Assembly: GCA_907165135.1 (NCBI GenBank)
Contig: OU015567.1
Coordinates: forward strand, 8,804,001-8,868,000
Length of the DNA stretch: 64,000 bases
From: Oikopleura dioica
Lineage: Eukaryota; Animalia; Chordata
Direction: 5' to 3'
The translations under genes were made by a program, and so were the position numbers. The notes beneath the pieces are model-generated. The model saw only the letters and a program-made list of their open reading frames with translations, was not told the origin of the DNA and did not search any database. Shown here piece by piece: positions 33,571-52,646 of the stretch. Every line of letters begins with the position of its first letter. Position 1 is the first letter of the stretch.

Positions 33571-34006
33571 TGTTAGTGTCCGCATAACCGGGGAGCTAGA
33601 ATATTGTGCCGTTACCGGGTAGAGCTACTCGCCCTTTGCCGAGGAATATAAAACTAGCATCACTAACATTAATGACCGTCCCTAAAACCGGTCTCTTTTT
33701 ACTCAATAATAACATAGTAGGGTTCTAGCCCGAGTCTCTATTTTATTATGCACAGCTTCTGTAGTAGGTCTCTAAGTGCAGTGGCATTTCGCCGATAAAA
33801 ATGCAGGGAGCTCCGCTTCTTGCGAAGGTGCGTGGATGAGTGAAGAAATCGGCGTCGCTGGCAGTGGGTATCTTGAGAGCGTAGGCGGGCGGGGGCCAAT
33901 CCGCGGTCAAGGAAGATTCACGCGGCAGGCTCGGTGTGAGAGAGTCGGAGGACTCGGAAATGATAGGTGGAGGACTTTCACACAGGTGGAAATCCGGACA
34001 CTAATA
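33571..34006 (-). repeat. 3' LTR (436 bp)
   Basis: TGTTAGTGTCCG...CGGACACTAATA on the plus strand (12-bp terminal inverted repeat, 1 mismatch); identical to 41401-41836 by eye; minus-strand AATAAA at 33742-33747. Confidence 0.97.
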
Positions 34007-34009
34007 TAG

Positions 34010-34020
34010 TCCCCTCTATC
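34010..34020 (-). promoter_or_regulatory. Polypurine tract
   Basis: Minus-strand GATAGAGGGGA, 3 nt before the 3' LTR. Confidence 0.8.
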
Positions 34021-34156
34021 ATTTTCGAGAGCTGCTACTGTCGGGCAGTGTTCTTCGCGGTTTCGAGCTTGTTCTTCTTGGCAGTGTAGCTCTGGTCAAG
34101 GCTGGAGACGAAGTTATGGTACAGCGACATGTATGGGCCAACGGAGAGCCTCTTCA

Positions 34157-34943
34157 TCAAAGTTCGTAGTGGGAGCGATTTTTCAGTCGACCAGAATACT
34201 TTGGAGTGGAGTCGATTTTGGTACCATGGTGTTTGATCAGCTTGAGGAGCTGGGTAATTCGTCGGTGGCATTCCAGAGCAGCTTCCGGCGTGCGCTGGAT
34301 TCGTCGAACATCCTGGCCTTCGATTGCGGAGCCAAGGATTTTTGCGTTTATTTTCTTTCGCCGGAGGTGAGCTCGTCGGGCCGCTCGTCGTTTTCGCCGC
34401 TCTTCTTGTCGAAGATAGTCAGCGATGACTTTGGGGATTTCATCTTCGTCGGACTCTGGGTCGCTTTCAACGACGCGCGTTACTTCGATTTCGTCTGGTC
34501 GCGGTTCACGGGGCGCTTCAACCTTTTTTGGTGGAGGTGGAGGCGGCGGAAGATTTTCTTTCGCTGGAAGAACCGGAGTTGGCGCAGATTCGTCGATGAC
34601 TAGTCGTGGAGTGTAACTGCCGGGCGACCAGGTTGGAGATAATCCATCGTCGGACGAGATATCGATGTCTGACTCATCTGGTGGTGATTTCGATCGTGGG
34701 GAGTCTTTCGTCGCGGTGTTTCGGATCGTCGTGGCGGAGTCTTTCGGCGTGGAGTTTTGGATCGTCGGGCTCGGCTCGGTGGTCGATCTCGAGGGCGGTT
34801 TCGTCGATCAGTTCGGGAGCGCTCCGACCGTAAGTTTCCGGACCTTTCGGTCTTTCGCGAACGGGACTTCCGTGTAACTTCGAGAATGACGCTTTTCAGC
34901 CGAACCATTCTAGAAATCACGGAGATCACTTTTTGTCAGCCAT
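34157..34943 (-). CDS. Retrotransposon ORF3 at the env position; disordered RS/Pro-rich, acidic, then basic; two 1-nt frameshifts
   Basis: Joining frames at the A5 run (34930-34934) and the C4 run (about 34698-34701) gives about 262 aa: MADKKVISV...SRSRKTERS...KTPRRKTPPRRSETPRRKTP(P)RSKSPPDESDIDISSDD...PPPPPPP...DYLRQEERRKRRAARRAHLRRKK...SHYEL*. Confidence 0.6.
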
Positions 34944-35378
34944 AAAATGCCTGACAGGGTATTTTTACGGGGGCTTTTCGCCAACACTCGTTCGTAGTTT
35001 TTTACAGTATTTTTCGATTTTTTTTTGTAATATTTTTTAAATTTTTTATTTTGGAGGGCAGAAAATTGGTCCGAGTAAATAAATGGGTTAACATGCGGTA
35101 GGTTAACGGGGCTACTTTAACAAGAAAAAGGATTTAGAAAATAGTGAGTAGAGTAAGACAAAAAAAAAAATTTTGGTAATTTTACGTCGATTGGTTAAAA
35201 TTAAGAAATTCTAGATAAAATTGGTGACATAAAGAACTCGTAAAATTTAGTAAGGGATAATTTGAACAGGTAAAAGGGCCGTAAACGGCGCTTATTGAAC
35301 AGAGAAAAATGGGCTCAAAGAGCGCGAAAAATTTCATTTAAACGGCTAAAATGGCCGGGGAAGGGTCGAGCGGGAATT

Positions 35379-38300
35379 TTATTTTGGGGGTTTGCGGTTT
35401 CTTGATGATCTTCTAAGTTGAAAGGGGGCGAGATTCTTGAGTAGTTCTTGTGTCTTCTTGTCCTCTCCTCTTTGAATTCTTGATCGGCTTCTCGTTTTCA
35501 TCGGACCTGGTGACATAGACCGTCTCGCAATCCTCACAGGTGAGGTTGACTGTGCCCTGGGAGGCGGAGAGCAATCCTTCACAGGTGAAGTTGGAGGAGT
35601 ATGGAACTCATCGGTTGTCAGGTCGAGATTTGGAGTCTCGGGCTCAGTGGGAGCCTTTTCCGCGGTTGTGCTGTCGAGAGAGTCCCCTGGACTAGGGTCA
35701 CGCATCTCGACTCTTTCAGGTTCGTTGAGCTGTATTTTTGGCGGCTCGTGATGGTATTGCGTTGCTCTGAGAGGGATTCTGAAGTCCGGGAACCACGGTA
35801 GCGGGCCTAAAGCCGGTTTTCGTTCTTCGACTTTCTGGACTTGTGTTCGGTGGACCCAATCTTCGGCGCCTTCAACGTCTTTGATACGGACGACGGAGCC
35901 GTTACTGGCAGTAACTTCGAACGGACCGAGCCATGTGACTTTGGTCCTTTTGGCGGTAGCAGAGTTGGGTCGATGAAGGAGAACAGAATCGCCTTCGACA
36001 ATTTCAGGAGCCGGAACCTTCGGCTGCGTTTGTTTTCGTAACGCGGCATCTGCTTCTGCTTGAAACTTCATGATTTTCTCGTGAAGCGTTCTTTTCGCTT
36101 CGTATCGTCTCTTCGTATATTCGTCGACCGTCAGATCTTCTGTTTGCGTGACTAAATCGTATTCACACAATCGCGGTTTTTCCAAGTATACGACCTCGAA
36201 AGGTGAGATCTTGGTGGAGCAGTTCGGAAGTCGGTTGATGGTAGAGACGACGTGCTGGAGACAATCAGTCCACTCAGCTTGAGTTTCGTGGACCATCACA
36301 AAGAGTGCGTCTTTTATGGTTCGATGTTGAACCTCGAGGAGGCCAGTACTTTGTGGTCTGTAACTCGTGTGATATCGCCAGGTGATGTTATGTAGCTTGG
36401 CGAATTGTTGATTCATCTCCGCGACAAAATGTCTTCCTCTGTCGCTAGAAATTGATACTACCCGCGGAAATCGATGGAGCACGTGGTCTCTGATGCCTTT
36501 AACTGCGTCGACTGCGCGGTGGTTTCTGCATGGTACTGCGATCAAAAATCGCGAGTATGTGTCGATGACAGTGAGGATGTATTTGAAACCAAGTTTGGTG
36601 ACCGGCATGTCGACGAAATCGCATAGAATGTGTTCGAAGATGCGCGTTCCTTTCGGAATGCTTTGCGGTTCAGGTTGTCGAGATTGACCTCGTCCACCTT
36701 TTCGATGCTGGCAGTTGATGCAACTCCTGCTGAAGTTGACTATATCGTCGGCTTTCTCGGGCCAAGTTAGATGGATCATCGCACTTTTCATGCGCGCGGC
36801 GCCCATGTGGTTGTTGTCGTTATGATATCGACTGAGTACATCAGGGCGGAGGGCTCTGGGAACGTAGATTTTACCGTCGACGAGAAGTGCGCCAGTTTCT
36901 TCGCACCTGGTGAGTTTATTTCGGTGGCGGCGGAGCCAGCTTACTTCATCGTCTTCCTTAGCGACGGACAACTGCGGGAACTCGAAGTTGTGTTCAACTG
37001 ATTCCAAAATCTTCTTGATGTTTTCATCAGCATATTGCTCGCTGCTGATTCTGGTTTTAACGCTGTCGTCCATGATCGGTTCGTTTTTGCTCACCAGAGC
37101 GACGATTGATTCCGGGCAAGTTAGATCATCGCCGTTGAGTTTGATCTTGTCGACACTTTCTGTGTCGGCCCAGGACGGGATGTAGACTTCGAATTTGCCG
37201 ATATTCACGAATCTACCGGCCGGTTCTGACGGGATATCCTTCGATGTGCGGCTCACCGGTTGTTCAGGATTTCTGCTGAGGAAGTCTGCGATGGAATTGT
37301 CTTTTCCGGGGAGGTAAGTAACTATGAAGTTGAACTGGGAGACGGTGTTTAGCCATCGCGCTAATTTATCATTCCGCGGTAGTTTGCAGTCCAAAAAGGT
37401 AAGTGCTCGGTGATCGACTCGAACAACGAATTTTCGGCCGCGGAGGAATACTTTCGCATCCATAATCGCCCATACAACTGCTAAACTTTCTCGTTCAGTA
37501 GCTGAGTATCGTGTCTGAGCGTCGTTGAGCGTTTTTGAATTAACGCGGATGATTCTCCATTTCTGTCCCTCTACACATTGGGTCAGGCAGTAACCCATTG
37601 CGTATTTTGAAGCATCCGTGGTAAGTGTAAATGGAAGCGACCAGTCTGGGTGGTAAATCATCATCGGGGAGCAGAGTCGTTCCTTGATGATTTCGAGGGC
37701 TTTGTCGGCTTCGCGAGTCCAGGTAAGCTTCTTTCCGGGTTTATTCGTTTTCAGCAGATTGGAAATGGGTTTGATGATGGCAGAGAATGACATCTTTGCT
37801 ACATTTTGATCTTCGCGTGCCGCGGCGTATTGTCTAAGCCAGTTCATGGCGCCCAAGAGGCTTTGGAGCCCTTTGTACGTTTTAGGAGGGGCCATTTTCC
37901 TGAATGCGTTTGCGTTTCCAGGATCAGCAATCGATCCAAGCGGGGTGATCATCCGGCCGAGCCACTTGACGCGGTCGTAGAGAGCGTGAACTTTGTTTCC
38001 AGCGACAACCCAGCCGAATTTGTTGAGACAGCCAAATATTTCGTCCACGGTTTGGTAGAAGACGTCGAAATTTTCGGCAAAGATGAGGATATCATCTATG
38101 TAGCATATGAAGTTTTCCTTGTGAGTGACGCTTTCGAGAGAGTGGGCCAGGGCACGACTGAAAATCGAGCCACTGGTCTTAAGACCGAACGGTAAGCGCG
38201 TAAACATCAGGTTTTGCGACTTCCACATGATGGAAAGCTTGTGTTGGTCGCATTCTTCGACGGGCACGTTCCAGTATCCAGCTCTAACGTCGAGCGTGAG

Positions 38301-39317
38301 GAGGTACTTCTGATAGGGCGGGATGATCGACTCTGTTCCGAGGTCTGGCACGCAGAAGGAGTCTTCTTCGCACAAGATCTTGTTGAGGGTTGCCTTGAAA
38401 TTCATGACGAGTCTAGTAGATCCGTCGGGCTTCGCAACAGGGAGGATCGGGGTGTTAAATCCCTTATTGTTTTTGCATTTTGCGAGGACGGTGATTTTCT
38501 TTAGCCGTTCCACCTCGTTGTCCATCGGTTCGTCGTAGGCAGTCGCGGTTTTATACTGGTGTGCACTGGCAGTTCTGCCTTCGATGGTGGGGATTCTGGC
38601 CTTGTATGATGTAAATTGACCGATTGGGCGGTCTTCCATCGCAAAAACTCTTTTATGTTTCTCCATAAGTCCGCCAATTTTGACGGCTTCTGGGGCATTG
38701 TCGTTTGTACAGTTGATATCTGGGCCGAGTCGTGATTTTATTCCTTCGATGTATTTGTAGGGGTCCTCTGAGCTGCTGATCGCGTAGAACTTGTGCTGTT
38801 CCGTTTTCTCGTTAAAGGCGTCTCGGGAGGGCGCACCAATGTACGGCACGCGGGCCCATCCGGCTTTGTTTTTGAAGAATAATGTACGGTTGACGGTGTT
38901 GTACGCGATTTCTGAGCATCTCAGATTCATTGGATTTCGACCGAAGATCGCATCGAGTTGTATCATATCGTTGTTGACAACGTAGAACTTGACTCGAGGC
39001 CACAGAGTGTTTTTTCCTACTTTGATGTCGCAGGTGACTTCACCGAGGCATTGCTTATTATTGGAGCCGACGCCAGAGATTGTCTGCGTAGTTGGTTTGA
39101 CGTCAAGTTGAAAGTGTTGTACGACAGATTCTCGTAGCAGGCTTCCGAAAGAGCCAGGGTCGAATAGTGAGTTGATAAATGTATCGGGGTAGGGGCTTTC
39201 TGGGAAGAAAACCGGGATGAATTGAGGGGAGCAGCTGCGCTGGACTCGCCTTGACAGGATAAGGGGACCACTTGCGTTTTCTATACCGGACGGTGGTCCT
39301 TCACCGGTGAAGTTTAG
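35379..39317 (-). CDS. pol: Pol polyprotein (aspartic protease, RT, RNase H, integrase) in the -1 frame relative to gag
   Basis: Frame open from 39317: protease NSLFDPGSFGSLL; RT LDVRAGYWNV, LPFGL, YIDDIL; RNase H TTDASKYAMG, YSATERESLAVVWA; IN HNDNNH...CINC, CDFVD, SSDRGRHF, GLLEVQH, WLGPFEV. Confidence 0.97.
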   Translation of the reverse strand, partial: LNFTGEGPPSGIENASGPLILSRRVQRSCSPQFIPVFFPESPYPDTFINSLFDPGSFGSLLRESVVQHFQLDVKPTTQTISGVGSNNKQCLGEVTCDIKVGKNTLWPRVKFYVVNNDMIQLDAIFGRNPMNLRCSEIAYNTVNRTLFFKNKAGWARVPYIGAPSRDAFNEKTEQHKFYAISSSEDPYKYIEGIKSRLGPDINCTNDNAPEAVKIGGLMEKHKRVFAMEDRPIGQFTSYKARIPTIEGRTASAHQYKTATAYDEPMDNEVERLKKITVLAKCKNNKGFNTPILPVAKPDGSTRLVMNFKATLNKILCEEDSFCVPDLGTESIIPPYQKYLLTLDVRAGYWNVPVEECDQHKLSIMWKSQNLMFTRLPFGLKTSGSIFSRALAHSLESVTHKENFICYIDDILIFAENFDVFYQTVDEIFGCLNKFGWVVAGNKVHALYDRVKWLGRMITPLGSIADPGNANAFRKMAPPKTYKGLQSLLGAMNWLRQYAAAREDQNVAKMSFSAIIKPISNLLKTNKPGKKLTWTREADKALEIIKERLCSPMMIYHPDWSLPFTLTTDASKYAMGYCLTQCVEGQKWRIIRVNSKTLNDAQTRYSATERESLAVVWAIMDAKVFLRGRKFVVRVDHRALTFLDCKLPRNDKLARWLNTVSQFNFIVTYLPGKDNSIADFLSRNPEQPVSRTSKDIPSEPAGRFVNIGKFEVYIPSWADTESVDKIKLNGDDLTCPESIVALVSKNEPIMDDSVKTRISSEQYADENIKKILESVEHNFEFPQLSVAKEDDEVSWLRRHRNKLTRCEETGALLVDGKIYVPRALRPDVLSRYHNDNNHMGAARMKSAMIHLTWPEKADDIVNFSRSCINCQHRKGGRGQSRQPEPQSIPKGTRIFEHILCDFVDMPVTKLGFKYILTVIDTYSRFLIAVPCRNHRAVDAVKGIRDHVLHRFPRVVSISSDRGRHFVAEMNQQFAKLHNITWRYHTSYRPQSTGLLEVQHRTIKDALFVMVHETQAEWTDCLQHVVSTINRLPNCSTKISPFEVVYLEKPRLCEYDLVTQTEDLTVDEYTKRRYEAKRTLHEKIMKFQAEADAALRKQTQPKVPAPEIVEGDSVLLHRPNSATAKRTKVTWLGPFEVTASNGSVVRIKDVEGAEDWVHRTQVQKVEERKPALGPLPWFPDFRIPLRATQYHHEPPKIQLNEPERVEMRDPSPGDSLDSTTAEKAPTEPETPNLDLTTDEFHTPPTSPVKDCSPPPRAQSTSPVRIARRSMSPGPMKTRSRSRIQRGEDKKTQELLKNLAPFQLRRSSRNRKPPK

Positions 39318-39323
39318 TTTTTT
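39265..39323 (-). promoter_or_regulatory. -1 programmed ribosomal frameshift signal (A AAA AAC slippery site plus candidate H-type pseudoknot)
   Basis: Heptamer 39323-39317 directly before the gag UAA; 8-nt spacer; stem 1 ACCGG/CCGGU; stem 2 GGACCAC/GUGGUCC. Confidence 0.8.
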
Positions 39324-40273
39324 GACGTAGCATCGGAGTACGCAGAAGCCTCGGATGCGTCAGAGAAGTATTCATCTTCTACTTGAGTAGGGTCTCGGAG
39401 CTGGTAGCTTCCGTCCTCTTCGTCGGAGGGAATTTCTTGGTTGCAGCTTGAGTAGTGGGCGCCATACTGCTGCTGGGATTTCGATGGCTTGGAGCCGACG
39501 TGGCTTCTGCGGCTGCCATTTGATTTTTTGTCTTTATCGCCACGCTTTTTGGAATTGTTGGCGTTTTTGTCGTCTTTGTCGCCCTTATCTGCGTTTTTGT
39601 TCTTCTTTCTGCGGTCGCTGCTGCCGGGACGGCTGTTTCGAGGACTATCTCGAGGACTACCGCGGTGAGCTGCATTGAATCCGCTGTTGGAATGAACTTG
39701 CTGTCGAATTTGCTCAGCACGTGTCGCCAACTGGGCAGGGGAGGTAATTGAGGTGAGTTCGATTGAGATCGCTCTGAAGAGGGACTCGTCTTGTGTGCGC
39801 ACTTCAGTCAGGATCTTCAGGAAATTTATTAATTCTAGGCAATCATCGTAAGAAGGAGCGAAAACCTTTTGCTCCTCGCTACCATTTCGTGAAAGTGAAG
39901 CTCGACGCCTCAACCACTCCTTATGAATAGTAGCGATAGAGGTGAGCGATGCTTCAAGCTCAGATTGGTATTGAGGGAAGCTGGTTTTGTAGCTCTTTCT
40001 CTTGGAGAAAAATTCTTCTAATCGTTGGAAGATGTTGGAATGGCTTCCATATGTCGCGGTTATTGCTTGTTTTAACTCGTCGCTAGTCGTGATGGTTTTA
40101 CCAGCGAGTGTTCGGATGATGGAAGCGGGCAAGCACGGTTGCACGGCATTCCAAATTTCCATGAAGGAGATTGAAGGGCAAGCTCGGCTAATAGCCTTGA
40201 TTTTGGTGAGGAGATTGCTGCAGTCCTCATCAGAGCGTCCGCTGAACTTCAAGCTTGTAATGTAGCTTGTCAT
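39314..40273 (-). CDS. gag: Gag-like protein (319 aa), no CCHC zinc knuckle
   Basis: Position before pol; LKFSGRSDEDCSNLLTKI resembles the start of a gypsy capsid domain; basic low-complexity C-terminal third. Confidence 0.8.
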   Translation of the reverse strand: MTSYITSLKFSGRSDEDCSNLLTKIKAISRACPSISFMEIWNAVQPCLPASIIRTLAGKTITTSDELKQAITATYGSHSNIFQRLEEFFSKRKSYKTSFPQYQSELEASLTSIATIHKEWLRRRASLSRNGSEEQKVFAPSYDDCLELINFLKILTEVRTQDESLFRAISIELTSITSPAQLATRAEQIRQQVHSNSGFNAAHRGSPRDSPRNSRPGSSDRRKKNKNADKGDKDDKNANNSKKRGDKDKKSNGSRRSHVGSKPSKSQQQYGAHYSSCNQEIPSDEEDGSYQLRDPTQVEDEYFSDASEASAYSDATSKN

Positions 40274-40599
40274 GAGGAGGCCTCCCGAAATGCGTTTTCG
40301 TTGGACATGGGAGCGTGGACAATTTCGGGCTTGACGTCCGCGGTGGGGTTAGCCAGGTTATATTCGATCACTGCATCTTCGGCAGCTTTCAGATCGTTTT
40401 TGAGCGCTTGATAGTGCGCGTGTTGCGGATCGGATTCTTCGGGTGCGACGGTGAAGCGCTGAATCTGCGTCCGGAGAAGTTTGACTTCGCACAATTTCAT
40501 TCGAAATTCTTCTGCGGTTGTAGTAGTAGTAGACATCGTAGAAGTAGACAGCAGAGAGGGTACCAGAGGTGTCGACTTTGACTCTGTGTACGGGCTCAT
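40270..40599 (-). CDS. Retrotransposon ORF0 (109 aa) upstream of gag; its stop overlaps the gag start (ATGA)
   Basis: ORF track 40270-40599; Ser/Thr-rich start then two predicted amphipathic helices; TGA at 40272-40270, gag ATG at 40273-40271. Confidence 0.6.
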   Translation of the reverse strand: MSPYTESKSTPLVPSLLSTSTMSTTTTTAEEFRMKLCEVKLLRTQIQRFTVAPEESDPQHAHYQALKNDLKAAEDAVIEYNLANPTADVKPEIVHAPMSNENAFREASS

Positions 40600-41388
40600 T
40601 TTTATCTATTCTAGTAGAAGCTTTTCACGTGAGTCTCCATTGGTCCGAAAAATTTTCGTCCCCCAGAACGTATTAATATTTTGTCCCCCAGCGGGTAAAT
40701 CCGTTTAAAATTGGGCATATCTAGGTATAATCGGGCAACTGTAACGTAGAATAGCTTTCACTGCCTTCAGCAGGAATATTTTTATTCCGAATCCGCGGAA
40801 AATAGGCGTGTTTGCGTGTACCGAGGGCTTATGTCAATGTTTACTAGAAAAGAATTGTTAAATTTAGATTTATTGAGAAAAATCCCTTTCCTCAAATTAA
40901 TTTTGAAAAATTTCGAAAAATTTAAGCTCGTGTCGATTATTCGCGGTTATTTCGCCTTTTCGGCTTGATTCTGGGCTGTTAAGCATGAAAATAGGCATTT
41001 CTAGCTTAGTTGGGGATTACCGGGTCGTGATTGGCTAATTTGGAAATACTGGTCGCTGATTGGACGAGAGGGAAATTCACGTGCGGCTAGGGGTCCTAAT
41101 CGCCTGAGTATTTCGCCAGTGTTCGCTAACCGCATAACACTACTAGCTAGCTCGCACGTGGGGGCAGTGTCTTTCAGGCGTTCTGATTGGTTGGACTGGG
41201 GCCGCGGGTGTAATTTCATTTTTTGGAAAAAAAATTTCGTTCTGGATGGACTTACCTTTGGAGAGCTCACGTGGTGCGTTTCCTATGGGCTGAACTTCCG
41301 GTACTAGGTTACTGTGAGTTAAGAGTAGATTAAGGGTAGGGTCAGTCGAGGAAACTTCCAAATCCGGAGATTTGAAAATGACCAGGTA

Positions 41389-48547: not shown

Positions 48548-51500
48548 CTATGCATGTTTTTGAAGAATTTTAAGAGCATAATCCGGATCGAAGTTTGCTC
48601 GCTGAAGTGCTTTTTGGCAGATGTTTTCGGGAAAGACTTGATATAGTCGTTGAGTCTAAATGAGTCTGTAGTTGTAGAAAAATGACGGAAGAAACCTACC
48701 TTTAATTGTTTAATTGCCTTAAGGGGGTAGAAACAGCTTTTTTCCGAAAAAGGCGATTTTTGACCGGCGCTTCAGACAAGAGAATCTTACATTTTCAAAT
48801 TTTCTCTTCAGGTTTAGATAGATACATCTTAGATCTAGGAACATCTCTCTCGAAATTTGTTTTAGTCATCAAGTTTTTGAGTAAGCGGGCTCAAAAGCAG
48901 CTCAACTCTCCGAAATTCTCGATTTTCGCAAATTTTTAAACACGTATATCTCGAGTCCCTTGATAGTTAAATATATTTCATTCATGTTTTTGTGAAGCTC
49001 AACCCTTTTTCTAGGAGCATTTATAAGGAGATTTCGTGAACATAAATAAATCTCAGGTTTTCTTTTATGTAGCTGCAGTCCAAAATCGAGAAAGCTGTTT
49101 CTACCCCCTTAAGGGTGTCCATATTTGTCCGTTCTAGGGCTTGTTTGATAGCAGCTTCGCTGGTAAATGGGCACTTTGCTGCAACACTGTCGATTTTCAG
49201 CCTCATCGCTTTTTGCTCAGTGATTGATTCTCGCTTTCGTCCTCTAGCAAAGATATCCCTTTCTTCCTCCCTTTCGGGAATGCTCTTCGGTTGTGAGTTT
49301 TCTTTCACTTCGGAAGTTGCGAAGGCGGAAACTGGCTGGTATTTCTGTCTTAATGCACTAACTGCATCAGAGGCTGACATAAATGCTAGTTTCGACATGT
49401 CGTTATTGATGGATTTCTCATTTTCTTTGGCTTTTTGATTGGGAATTCCTATTGATGTCTGACGGGAGGGTGGAATTACTTGAGCTGTTTTCTGTGGGCT
49501 GATCATTGAGTTGGCTCTTTTTGGAAGCGACGATCGCTTTTCTTGGTTTTCAAGGTCGAGGCGATGAGATGGAAAAGTGTTCATGCTTGATTGAGCTTTT
49601 CTCTCCAGCGTTCTAGAATAAAATTGTAGGTGCTTGATCTAATGTAAGGAAAACTTACGCTTCTCTCGGTGAAATGATAGTTGAGTTTGTTTCTTGATTA
49701 TTTTTGACAGGGAAATTTCGTGGCGGCTTTGAAGGAATGATTTTTTCTTCGGAGATTTCTTCCCTTGACTCTGTCTCTGGTGGTGGAAAGCTTGGGACTT
49801 TATCTTGCGTTGGCGAGGAGAAATCAACCCAATCACGAGTTAAATTGTCATTTCTGACATTTTGTGGATTCTTTGTTTTTACGATCTCTAACGGAAGTTT
49901 CAGTGGAGACGATTCTTCGTTGATTGTTTCTCCAGGACTCTCTTTTCGTACTTCTTCGACTGGTATTGTAACTGGCTCAGAATCAGGCTTTGTGTTCTTT
50001 TTATTGAACCAGCTAAACGCATCCTCGAGGTTTATTTCTGGCTTCATTGATTTTTCCTCGTTTCTGGGAGAATACTTTGGCGCGAAGGGATTCGTATCTG
50101 AATTCAACCAGTTTGGCTGTTTTGTGGGAGACTGAGGCTCCGGAGTTTTACTTCTTTCTGCTATTGCGGGATATGAAGGTCGTATCGGTTGAGGCGTGAT
50201 CGATCGATTTTCAGTGATGGGATTGAGGGGTCGAATGGAAGGGGTCAACACTGGAAAGGACACAGGAAAGTGATTCGATGAATCAGGCTTTTGAATGGGA
50301 ACTAATGCTGAATCAGCAGTTGGGAATGACAATGAGAAATCAACAGGAAAGTGGTTGCTTCCAACGATATTTTGATTACCATTCTGCAGAAACTCTGGAT
50401 TGTGGTTGAAAATATCTCGTGTCATTTGCCCTCCATCGGTAATGGTCAAGTTTGATGCTCTGTTGATCAATTCTAGCTCTTTTCCAAGCGCATCCATTTC
50501 GTCACTATCTTCGTCCGTTTCTGGAGTTACTTGGTAGACTTCGTTATAGTTGCTTGCGCTTTCTCTTGAGTTGGTTTCTGTGAGGTTTTGCGATGAATAA
50601 ACCTCATTGTAGTAATTTTGATTTTGCGCCATTCTGCTGCCACTTCTCGTTACGTCGATACTCGATCCTCTATAGAAAGAGGCATCAGATTCAAAACTGT
50701 CGACCCTCTCTGAAGAGTAAATTCGAGGTTGCTTGTTTTCATCGTCAGACGAAGATTCGAATGAATCGTAGGTCCTGGTGATTTCAGGCTGAGGAGCTAC
50801 TTTATTGCTTGATGCTCTGATTTGCCTTCCTATTTCTCTATGCATATCCTGGAATGATTTCGGTGGCGCTTTCGGAGTTGGTTGTTCTTTATAAACAGGT
50901 CTTTCCGCTAGCTCCTCGGAGAGAGAGCCGAGAAGATCCATCCCCTGCGCCGTAGGATTCACTTGATTTTGATTCGGCTCGGGTTGTTTTACCGAAACTG
51001 GGCCACTAACGGGCCTTGGTGGTGGCCGCCGTTTGGAGACAGTTTTCTTTGGAACAATCGGATTCTCCAATATGCTCGGGTCAATTTGATCCGCTTTGCC
51101 CCACGATGTTCCTCCCTTTCCATCTCCGTGAGCTGCATGGATGAAACTGTCCGGGACTGGCGCTGAAATGTCGCTTTTGCTGACTCGCGCTCGCCCCAAG
51201 GATCCTGCTTTGCTCCCTTTGGTCCCAACTGGTCCCAGGAGCGTCATAGAAATAGGACCGATGGCGAGGCTCGAAGAATTCTGAGCAAGAGCGATTCCTT
51301 CGCGAGTCTTGATAATGTGAACAGTATCACCAGCGTTGACCTTCAATCGATTAGGATCGCTGCATTGAGCGTTTACTTCTGCTTCTTTTGGCATTAGCTC
51401 GCTCAGAATCTTGTAAAGATCGCTGAAACTAGGCCGTAGTCGCGCATCGCTCAACCAGCATTTCTGAGCAACCACCCAAAAATCACTAGTGATTTTTCCT

Positions 51501-52646
51501 GGCTCGGCGAGTCGCTCGCCAATTTTCAGTTTTCGGACAATTTCGACCGCCTTTACGCCAGACCAAGGGGAGAGACCGTAGTTGAACATTTCCCATACAG
51601 TCACTCCAAAGGACCAGACATCGGATTTCTCCGAAAACGTTCTCTTCGTCAGCGATTCAAGGGAGCTCCAAGCGATTGGGATTTTGCGATCTTCCGACAT
51701 AAGATATTCCCCGTTTTCATTCACTCTTCTCATTAATCCAAAATCGCCGACCTTGACTTCATTTTGGTTGTAAATCAAAATGTTGCGCAACGCAAGATCG
51801 CGATGGACAAACTTCTTTGAGGCCAAATAATCCATGCCTTTTGCAATTTGAACGGAAAACTCACACAATCGGAGGACGCTGAAATCACGCTGCTTTCTCA
51901 GTCGGGTTTGGAGAGATCCTCCTGGCGCGAGTTTCATCACCATCTTCAGCGGTTGGGAAAGGACGATTCCGTAAAGAGGGAGGAGATAACGATGGTCCAG
52001 CTCCGCCATGACACTGATTTCTTCGAAAAAGTCGTAAATTGCGTTCTTGTCCGCTTCATCGCCGAGCTAATCGAAAAATAATTAAATTCTTCTTGACGAT
52101 TCACCAAAGATAGGAATTCAAGGAATTCGGAAAAGTACCTTGAGCGTTTTAATAGCGACATCGATTTTGCCGCCTGGGGAAGTCCATACGCCCTCGACGA
52201 CGATTCCAAAAGTTCCATCTCCGAGTTTCTTTCCTTCCGCTAAGGAGGATGGGTTAATCAAGGCGCCTCTCTGGTCGATGGTTTTAACAGAGTTGCTGTG
52301 GTAATTCAGTGTTGGTAGATTCTTTCCATACTGAAAAATGACATTTAAAACAATAATTTCAGCTGGCTTCTAGTGGGACCTGTTTCAGATGTTTCTTATT
52401 CCGTTTCTTTTCTTTTTTCACCGCTGCAAGAAGCCGTCTTTGAGCAGGTTCAGATAATCCAATCGAGCTCAAGAAATTTGGAGTTACATGGTCGAAATGT
52501 TCCGGAAGAGTGATATCCGCATCCTGAATGAGTTTTTTAGTTTTTTATTGATTCTTTTGAAAAGCCAATTTTACCTTGAACTTGAGAAAGTAGTTTTCCA
52601 AGCGGACAGAGACCAATAAGTCACGCAGCCAAATACTATCCGTCAT
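48548..52646 (-). CDS. TNK2: ACK1/TNK2 non-receptor tyrosine kinase (SAM, kinase, SH3, CRIB, Pro-rich, UBA)
   Basis: SAM-like MTDSIWLRDLLVSVRLENY; kinase FVHRDLALRNIL, VGDFGLMR, IPIAWSSLESL, SDVWSFGVTVWEM; CRIB ISAPVPDSFIHAAHGD; UBA AIKQALERTNMDTLK|AIKQLK|TQRLYQVFPENICQKALQRANFD. Confidence 0.93.
48723..49108. mobile_element. TTAA-targeting MITE (Kolobok/T2-like) inserted in an ACK1 coding exon; probable intron
   Basis: Perfect 18-bp TIRs GGGGGTAGAAACAGCTTT / AAAGCTGTTTCTACCCCC; TTAA TSD at 48719-48722 and 49109-49112. Confidence 0.92.

Follow-up and report, generated by a model that had tools for sequence, protein, structure and literature searches.

The origin of spliceosomal introns is a long-standing question, and by the time an intron born from a transposon is observed, its birth nearly always lies far in the past. 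Introners have reportedly been described by Huff (2016) and Gozashti (2022) in Micromonas, Aureococcus, dinoflagellates and others. Moreover, the 2019 work of Henriet et al. is said to deal with the MITE-derived non-canonical introns of Fritillaria borealis, and the 2010 genome paper of Denoeud et al. is said to be the source for the G*-AG and the transposon-derived introns of Oikopleura. Introners resemble the element in the ACK1 gene described here in being short DNA transposons, in deriving one splice site from the element and completing the second with the target-site duplication, and in a removal that is, or here would be, precise or nearly so. However, an introner family is defined by many spliced copies in genes, whereas the family described here has no visible gene enrichment, as judged from contig ends only, and its splicing is putative.

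MITE-derived introns have been described in the larvacean Fritillaria, according to a review (PMC11282704). As presented there, the introns of F. borealis share with the ACK1 case a larvacean-type genome, a proposed MITE origin with inverted-repeat ends and a tolerant spliceosome that neutralises insertions, but they are mostly AG-AC or AG-AT, number in the thousands, are fixed and have been shown to be spliced, whereas the ACK1 case is one polymorphic insertion with putative GT-AG or GG-AG borders, known from DNA. With reference to Denoeud et al. (2010), Yenerall & Zhou (2012, PMC3443670) list the transposon-insertion model of intron gain for Oikopleura, and the route given there is the one considered here, in which a transposon lands in an exon and the splice sites lie at the duplication or within the transposon ends. 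In the classic form of the model the duplication is AGGT; in ACK1, TTAA plus a host G gives the acceptor only, and the candidate donor lies in the terminal inverted repeat. In the published Oikopleura dioica genomes, 11-12% of introns are non-GT/AG, many of them GA-AG (PMC8008620; PMC7072748). Kolobok transposons are defined by a TTAA target-site duplication and by termini 5'-RR and YY-3', which set them apart from piggyBac (PMC9587614).

Here, we analysed a stretch of 64,000 nucleotides of O. dioica (the window), in which a short element interrupts the exon that encodes the C-terminal tail of an ACK1-like kinase. The best overall explanation, to which we give a probability of about 0.5, is a young, segregating Kolobok-type MITE in the ACK1 tail exon of a compact, larvacean-type (Oikopleura-like) genome, with two possible fates for the pre-mRNA. 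Within it, the part that states a young, still-segregating exonic insertion is close to certain. What is new here is that the insertion is polymorphic, that sister lineages have an uninterrupted exon, that the signature is that of Kolobok and not of piggyBac, and that the element exists in tens of copies. The features of the locus are as follows.

48548..52646, minus strand: complete coding region of the ACK1/TNK2-like gene, which starts with the ATG at 52646-52644 and whose introns are deduced from frame continuity
49659..52066, minus strand: large ACK1 exon, encoding the greater part of the tyrosine-kinase domain, the CRIB (GTPase-binding) domain and a low-complexity linker
49113..49612, minus strand: host coding exon upstream of the insertion, in which the ACK1 tail has its first UBA-like repeat; runs on into TTAA
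49109..49112, no strand: high-coordinate copy of the TTAA target-site duplication; on the minus strand inside the codons CTT AA(G)
48723..49108, no strand: MITE body, 386 bp, non-coding, with no Rfam match
49091..49108, minus strand: second terminal inverted repeat, an identical 18-mer, carrying the candidate donors GG (49107-49106) and GT (49104-49103)
49021..49023, minus strand: premature stop if the element is retained, after MDTLK and 29 junk residues
48723..48740, plus strand: terminal inverted repeat GGGGGTAGAAACAGCTTT, GG terminus
48719..48722, no strand: low-coordinate copy of the TTAA duplication; on the minus strand AA plus host G48718 gives the candidate AG acceptor
48700..48718, minus strand: host sequence G GCA ATT AAA CAA TTA AAG, from which splicing of the element would leave a putative 18-nt micro-exon (48717-48700, AIKQLK)
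48656..48699, minus strand: conserved 44-nt intron GTAGGT...TTTAG, at the same position in all sister-lineage contigs and joined in sister-lineage RNA reads
48548..48655, minus strand: last exon, which reads TQRLYQVFPENICQKALQRANFDPDYALKILQKHA and the stop codon; carries the second UBA-like repeat, with 35/35 and 33/35 identities to sister lineages

The host gene is, by its domain order of a tyrosine kinase (PF07714, E=2.6e-64) followed by an ACK-type CRIB domain (the ACK-specific GTPase_binding profile PF09027, E=1.2e-14), an ACK1/TNK2-type kinase. The Pfam UBA profile matches the last exon weakly (E=0.089). Exact removal of the element gives a tail that aligns with the very C-termini of two ACK1 proteins and shows no break where the insertion had been, with E=0.006-0.008 in a two-sequence search. 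The last exon is identical to those of the sister lineages at 35/35 and 33/35 residues, whereas the exon before it scores 141/155 and 86/155; the tail is thus, by comparison, strongly constrained, and its loss should be costly.

Read on the minus strand, the host sequence is ...ATG GAC ACC CTT AAG up to the element and, beyond it, GCA ATT AAA CAA TTA AAG followed by GTAGGT. The element body is flanked by perfect 18-bp terminal inverted repeats, and the inverted repeat reaches 24 nt, with 100% complementarity, when TTAA and the CC/GG of the host are counted in. The repeat at 48723-48740 corresponds on the minus-strand RNA to AAAGCUGUUUCUACCCCC, a pyrimidine-rich tract directly 5' of the candidate acceptor. 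A copy of the MITE can be outlined as TTAA-GGGGGTAGAAAC...GTTTCTACCCCC-TTAA, and the insertion target is the palindrome CCTTAAGG. Within the window, the 22-mer formed by TTAA and the repeat is confined to the two ends of the element, also when 3 mismatches are tolerated; 100 shuffles gave 0. A TTAA-anchored scan for inverted repeats over the whole window found the ACK1 element as its sole match, with 0.27 expected. Neither Rfam RNA families nor tandem repeats were found inside the element, and a protein search with its longest internal reading frame gave no candidate. If the element is read through, the translation is ...MDTLKGVETAFSILDCSYIKENLRFIYVHEISL.

These results agree with a preliminary description of the locus. 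Its coordinates for the TTAA copies, the 18-bp repeats and the 386-bp body were re-derived from the sequence and are all correct, as is its placing of the insertion inside the putatively UBA-coding exon, where CTT-AAG-GCA is split on the minus strand in the C-terminal tail. Translation confirms the stop that it gave at 49021, and the peptide LKGVETAF, which it had noticed in ORFs of both strands, is found in the ORF translations of both since the element ends are palindromic. The splice geometry that it proposed (GG, GT, AG, the 18-nt micro-exon, the 44-nt intron and the last exon at 48655-48548) is right in coordinates and arithmetic. Its claim that this geometry holds in either orientation is likewise borne out, because the terminal 22 nt are identical.

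The element has the properties generally expected of a MITE, being short, non-coding and multicopy, with terminal inverted repeats and a target-site duplication. TTAA is present on both sides of it and as a single copy in the empty allele. A piggyBac terminus is 5'-CCC...GGG-3', while the termini of the ACK1 element are 5'-GGGGG...CCCCC-3', of which the outermost GG...CC agrees with 5'-RR...YY-3'. A piggyBac-derived MITE was therefore considered and rejected: TTAA is common to both, but the GG..CC termini are the signature that distinguishes Kolobok (PMC9587614). Assigned by its end signature alone, the element is a non-autonomous DNA transposon of Kolobok type (TTAA duplication and GG..CC termini). 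It resembles the non-autonomous Kolobok MITEs in its TTAA-specific 4-bp duplication, 5'-RR...YY-3' termini, terminal inverted repeats, small size, lack of coding capacity and tens of copies; it differs in that an autonomous partner or a Kolobok DDD/E transposase was found neither in the window nor in the metagenome contigs or the protein collection scanned. Sequence bins of the DNA reads give the element a depth of ~30-70x that of its flanks, and many contigs split into differing flanks exactly at 48717-48719 and 49109-49113; the element belongs to a family of tens of copies. An exact scan of JGI metagenome contigs with TTAA and 15 nt of the repeat gave 0 matches.

The empty-site form, whose absence had been named beforehand as refuting the interpretation, exists, both in the DNA of two samples of the same lineage and as the uninterrupted exon of sister lineages. 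In the DNA runs X25 and X26, which carry the same species label and belong to the same lineage as the window, one contig each joins 48716 to 49107, skipping exactly 390 nt. The depth of this contig is about that of single-copy sequence (155 vs roughly 130-320 in X25; 19 vs roughly 15-22 in X26). In X25, where the empty contig has a depth of 155, window-type letters inside the element have a depth of ~130-137. Heterozygosity of X25 for the insertion was considered and found unprovable, because the depth of a contig adds up every copy and none of the contigs listed bridges a junction. The nearest sister lineage (L005/L006) has an uninterrupted exon, MDTLKAIKQLK, with CCTAAAGG at the site, and the exon is also uninterrupted in L003, L007 and L008, which have CTGAAAGC there. 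Furthermore, RNA reads of a sister lineage, with a loose end at 48657, read ...MDTLKAVKHLK joined directly to the last exon. The bulk RNA runs X5 and X6, which carry the species label, represent a diverged lineage (8-10 partial reads, 90-95% identity) and are uninformative on the element; it is in them that the unbroken sister-lineage mRNA is seen. Across the sites compared, the target TTAA is confined to the lineage of the window, where it is created by a synonymous Leu change from CTA/CTG to CTT.

An assembly artefact, that is, a repeat copy misplaced in the ACK1 exon, is very improbable. No contig shown bridges the host-element junction, and short-read contigs break at the repeat, which is as this explanation would have it; against it, the site carries a perfect TTAA duplication, and the element-free form differs by exactly the element and one TTAA (390 nt), as true transposition would leave it and mis-joining would not.

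In the filled allele of the preferred reading, the pre-mRNA may meet one of two fates. The element may be removed in frame, with the acceptor AG (48719-48718) made from TTAA and the host G. The donor would be either the GT of the inverted repeat at 49104, with 387 nt out and one extra Gly (TLKGAIKQLK), or the GG at 49107, with 390 nt out and TLKAIKQLK restored exactly. The micro-exon might also be skipped, in which case 449 or 452 nt would be removed and AIKQLK lost. Alternatively, the element may be retained, so that translation would stop at 49021 with loss of the most conserved part of the tail; an intron lies downstream of this stop, and the mRNA may also be degraded.

The candidate splice sites were judged against five introns inferred in ACK1 itself, which start with GTAAAA, GTCCCA, GTACTT, GTAAGT and GTAGGT; a splice-site weight matrix built from the window's own introns (bridged ORFs) was far too noisy and was discarded. 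Both candidate donors match ~4/9 positions of CAG|GTAAGT and are weaker than all five of these natural donors, which themselves include poor ones (GTCCCA and GTACTT). The candidate acceptor is AAG, with A at -3. The candidate intron, of 387-390 nt against 44-72 nt for the other ACK1 introns, would leave an 18-nt micro-exon, and in the predicted RNA fold a perfect 24-bp stem pairs the element ends and covers both splice sites. The inverted repeat gives a pyrimidine tract before TTAAG, and acceptors of the TTAAG kind are probably in use, because the neighbouring conserved intron of L005/L006 can end only in ttattaag. In the protein collection, searches with the large exon and the read-through ORF for transcript-derived proteins of this lineage gave genomic ORFs only, none with a spliced tail. 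On sequence alone, removal of the element by splicing is possible, not compelling.

At least partial rescue by splicing comes a little short of an even chance and stands marginally above no useful splicing. If rescue holds, the ACK1 insertion would rank as a candidate for an intron at birth and not as an established one. The strongest competing explanation, marginally less probable than rescue, is a plain disruptive insertion. Here removal is nil or negligible, and the filled allele encodes ACK1 cut after MDTLK and the junk residues, or its mRNA is degraded because the last intron follows the premature stop; it would persist through youth, rarity and/or heterozygosity, or because the protein can do without its last ~41 residues. 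Within the lineage the empty allele is segregating, and a polymorphic allele can persist unspliced if it is recessive or mildly deleterious. The weak donors, the AAG acceptor and the terminal stem over both splice sites argue in the same direction. So do most of the other copies, whose AT-rich, non-coding-looking flanks are as expected if exonic copies are selected against. Furthermore, a very recent burst of DNA transposons has been reported in Oikopleura (PMC4350176), and young insertions that have not been purged are therefore expected. However, no other part of the C-terminal region is as conserved as the tail beyond the insertion, so that truncation should be costly, and the published O. 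dioica genomes are rich in non-canonical introns.

The wider suggestions of the preliminary description fare less well. It had proposed that any insertion of the family at TTAAG would be splice-competent, which is weakened: the AG needs a host G, which follows TTAA in ~1/3 of the flank-bearing contigs of other copies (5/14 and 4/11 in X25), little above the roughly 20-25% expected by chance, and the donors are weak. Its suggestion of an intron-generating family is not supported. Such a dedicated, introner-like family, with a repeat and TTAA(G) design selected for landing in genes and splicing out either way, and a genome-wide gain of introns, is improbable. The identical terminal 22 nt, which offer G|GTAG on one side and a pyrimidine tract with TTAA on the other, would suit it, as would the palindromic insertion target; however, besides the scarcity of the needed G, the consensus flanks of the other copies are AT-rich, of low complexity and not exon-like (from contig ends, not a genome census), and the gene-dense window holds no other copy and no TTAA-bounded intron. 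Moreover, chance would combine an in-frame GT early in a random repeat with a G after TTAA in a few percent of insertions, which is not rare. A sizeable share of TTAA elements would have the ACK1 geometry by chance, and the case is no evidence of a family specialised for making introns. A further idea, tentative yet likelier than a dedicated family, is an active Kolobok-like MITE family, in a chordate that can be cultured, whose exonic insertions are self-neutralising: TTAA with G and the G-rich repeat would let a permissive larvacean spliceosome remove G[T/G]-AG introns. The ACK1 alleles would then be an intron caught at birth and still segregating, and the family a possible source of the unusually frequent G*-AG introns of Oikopleura.

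If the element is not spliced, the ACK1 case comes down to a deleterious insertion allele of young age, whose only use would be to mark ongoing Kolobok-type activity. The exon with and the exon without the transposon are both present in one animal lineage, with a strongly conserved tail downstream, and the filled and empty alleles could show whether a fresh exonic insertion of a DNA transposon is already handled as an intron, and at which splice sites.

The exon that encodes the UBA tail of an ACK1/TNK2-type kinase gene, on the minus strand, is split by a TTAA-flanked MITE. The preliminary description of this element, its TTAA duplication and its terminal inverted repeat (TIR) matches the sequence exactly, and the donors, acceptor, micro-exon, 44-nt intron and last exon it proposed are all present at the positions below.

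Features of the element and its host gene (window positions).
52646 to 48548, minus: ACK1 coding region, from ATG to stop
48719-48722, + strand reading: low-coordinate copy of the TTAA duplication
48723-48740, plus: terminal inverted repeat GGGGGTAGAAACAGCTTT, directly after TTAA
ending at 49108, plus: reverse complement of GGGGGTAGAAACAGCTTT, followed by TTAA at 49109-49112
49107 and 49104, minus: candidate donors, GG and GT, respectively
48719-48718, minus: candidate acceptor AG
48717-48700, minus: micro-exon, 18 nt
48699-48656, minus: intron, 44 nt
48655-48548, minus: last exon

The element is 386 bp long (48723-49108) and contains no credible ORF, Rfam match or internal tandem repeat. Its inverted repeat is perfect over 24 nt once TTAA and the host CC/GG are counted in. 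The 22-mer formed by TTAA and the TIR has no further occurrence in the window at up to 3 mismatches and is absent from shuffles, and a whole-window scan for TTAA-bounded inverted repeats returned none besides this element. Read on the minus strand, the host sequence is ATG GAC ACC CTT AAG, followed by the element, GCA ATT AAA CAA TTA AAG and GTAGGT; read-through adds 29 foreign residues before a stop at 49021-49023.

The large ACK1 exon (49659-52066) encodes a tyrosine-kinase domain (PF07714, 2.6e-64) and an ACK-specific GTPase-binding domain (PF09027, 1.2e-14). When the element is removed exactly, the tail ...TSEAAIKQALERTNMDTLKAIKQLKTQRLYQVFPENICQKALQRANFDPDYALKILQKHA aligns unbroken with the extreme C-termini of two ACK1 proteins. 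On the last exon the Pfam UBA model stays below threshold (E=0.089), so the earlier label of an ACK1-type UBA tail, which seems reasonable for the spliced product, draws on this C-terminal alignment and not on the domain model. The genome is larvacean in look, with introns of 44-72 nt, very compact genes and relatives in marine plankton data only, and is taken here as Oikopleura-like. GC content in the window is about 0.40, except for a GC-rich block at 34000-41000 (0.45-0.49) with a strong skew of G over C and T over A. Within the large exon, RNA reads of X5 and X6, two bulk runs from a diverged lineage, skip 89 nt at 50026-50116 (3 reads each). The ends of this skip are GA..TG on the plus strand, with GT-AG on neither strand, and 89 is not divisible by three; lineage divergence in the low-complexity linker probably produced the skip as an alignment effect.

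The TTAA duplication and the 5'-GG...CC-3' termini of the element are the signature that distinguishes Kolobok from piggyBac (PMC9587614); an autonomous Kolobok partner was looked for in the window, in metagenome contigs and in a protein collection, and none was found. In X25 and X26, two DNA runs that carry the same species label, the terminal parts of the element have a depth of ~30-70x the flanks, and many contigs leave the element for unrelated sequence at precisely 48717-48719 and 49109-49113. The element is thus a member of a family of tens of copies, all ending at TTAA, where "tens" is the limit of precision, as summed contig depth is not copy number. The centre (48970-49036) reaches only ~6-16x the flanks and has ~10 positions at which nearly all other copies differ from the ACK1 copy. 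The family thus seems to fall into subfamilies with common ends, the ACK1 copy not being of the majority type. According to PMC4350176, DNA transposons underwent a very recent burst in Oikopleura.

The preliminary description had made the empty site a test of the insertion, and its outcome speaks for a true insertion. X25 and X26 each contain one contig, at about single-copy depth, that joins 48716 to 49107 and lacks exactly 390 nt, the element plus one TTAA. Flanking contigs of these runs differ from the window by 0-2%, and they therefore represent other haplotypes of the same lineage, in which the insertion is polymorphic. In the coding segment 49372-49591, each run has two haplotype contigs, one identical or near-identical to the window and the other with 18 differences in 220 nt (~8%), a very high allelic divergence for an exon. 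The exon is also uninterrupted in the sister-lineage contigs: L005 and L006 are 141/155 identical and encode MDTLKAIKQLK as in the window lineage, and L003, L007 and L008 encode MDTLKAVKHLK or near it. X5 reads, from an L003-like lineage, run ...GACACGCTGAAAGCAGTTAAACATCTCA(AG) straight into the last exon, which confirms the conserved downstream intron and a continuous message. The leucine codon at 49109-49113 is CTT in the window lineage only, and CTA or CTG in sister contigs (L005, L003, L007, L008); the synonymous change to CTT created the TTAA landing site, within the palindrome CCTTAAGG, in this lineage only.

Whether the filled allele could be rescued by splicing is a question on which the arguments from sequence cut both ways. 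In favour of splicing, removal would be in frame as 390 nt (exact), 387 nt (one Gly added) or, with the micro-exon skipped, 452/449 nt, and a pyrimidine-rich run from the TIR immediately precedes TTAAG. In the closest sister lineage, the intron homologous to 48656-48699 (within L005 1150-1500 and L006 630-980) would have to end in ttattaag, against ctcatttag in the window, for the conserved TQRLYQV to be retained, from which we infer that TTAAG acceptors are in natural use one intron from the insertion site. Against splicing, both candidate donors match CAG/GTAAGT at ~4/9 positions, below every natural ACK1 donor; in its favour, the short introns of ACK1, as deduced from frame continuity, themselves include weak donors (GTCCCA and GTACTT, beside GTAAAA, GTAAGT and GTAGGT). 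Also in favour, non-GT/AG introns make up 11-12% of those in O. dioica assemblies, GA-AG being unusually many (PMC8008620; PMC7072748). In GA-AG introns the GA is reported to be flanked by conserved bases, AG upstream and A downstream (PMC7072748); the GG candidate shares the upstream AG and lacks the downstream A. Further points against are that position -3 of the acceptor is A, the candidate intron would be 5-9x longer than its neighbours and leave an 18-nt exon, and the predicted RNA structure pairs the element ends in a perfect 24-bp stem over both splice sites, which co-transcriptional U1 binding could pre-empt. Identity is 35/35 and 33/35 in the tail behind the insertion and 141/155 and 86/155 in the exon before it, so an unrescued allele should be costly; the weightiest point against splicing is that a polymorphic allele requires no rescue to exist. 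On the side of splicing, PMC11282704 describes MITE-derived introns in the larvacean Fritillaria, and PMC3443670 lists transposon insertion among the sources of Oikopleura introns. We would give splicing of the ACK1 element a probability of about 0.45.

The wider proposal, that any insertion of the family would be splice-competent in either orientation, holds for orientation, which is independent by construction in the terminal 22 nt, but not for "any", since the AG acceptor requires a host G after TTAA. This G is found in 5/14 (left end) and 4/11 (right end) of the flank-bearing X25 contigs of other copies, little more than chance, and the flank consensus is AT-rich, of low complexity and not exon-like. 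Among insertions of any TTAA element, a few percent would by chance combine an in-frame GT in the first TIR bases with a G following TTAA. With a geometry so near chance, we saw no evidence of design for intron generation, and the suggestion of an intron-generating family is not supported.

The ACK1 element is a genuine insertion of a Kolobok-type MITE, young and segregating, in a coding exon that is conserved; its removal as a GT-AG or GG-AG intron is a sequence-level potential, unproven. The kind of event is already known from introners, the MITE introns of Fritillaria and the transposon-insertion model of intron gain. Here the filled and empty alleles are both at hand in a culturable animal, which makes the birth of an intron open to direct test.
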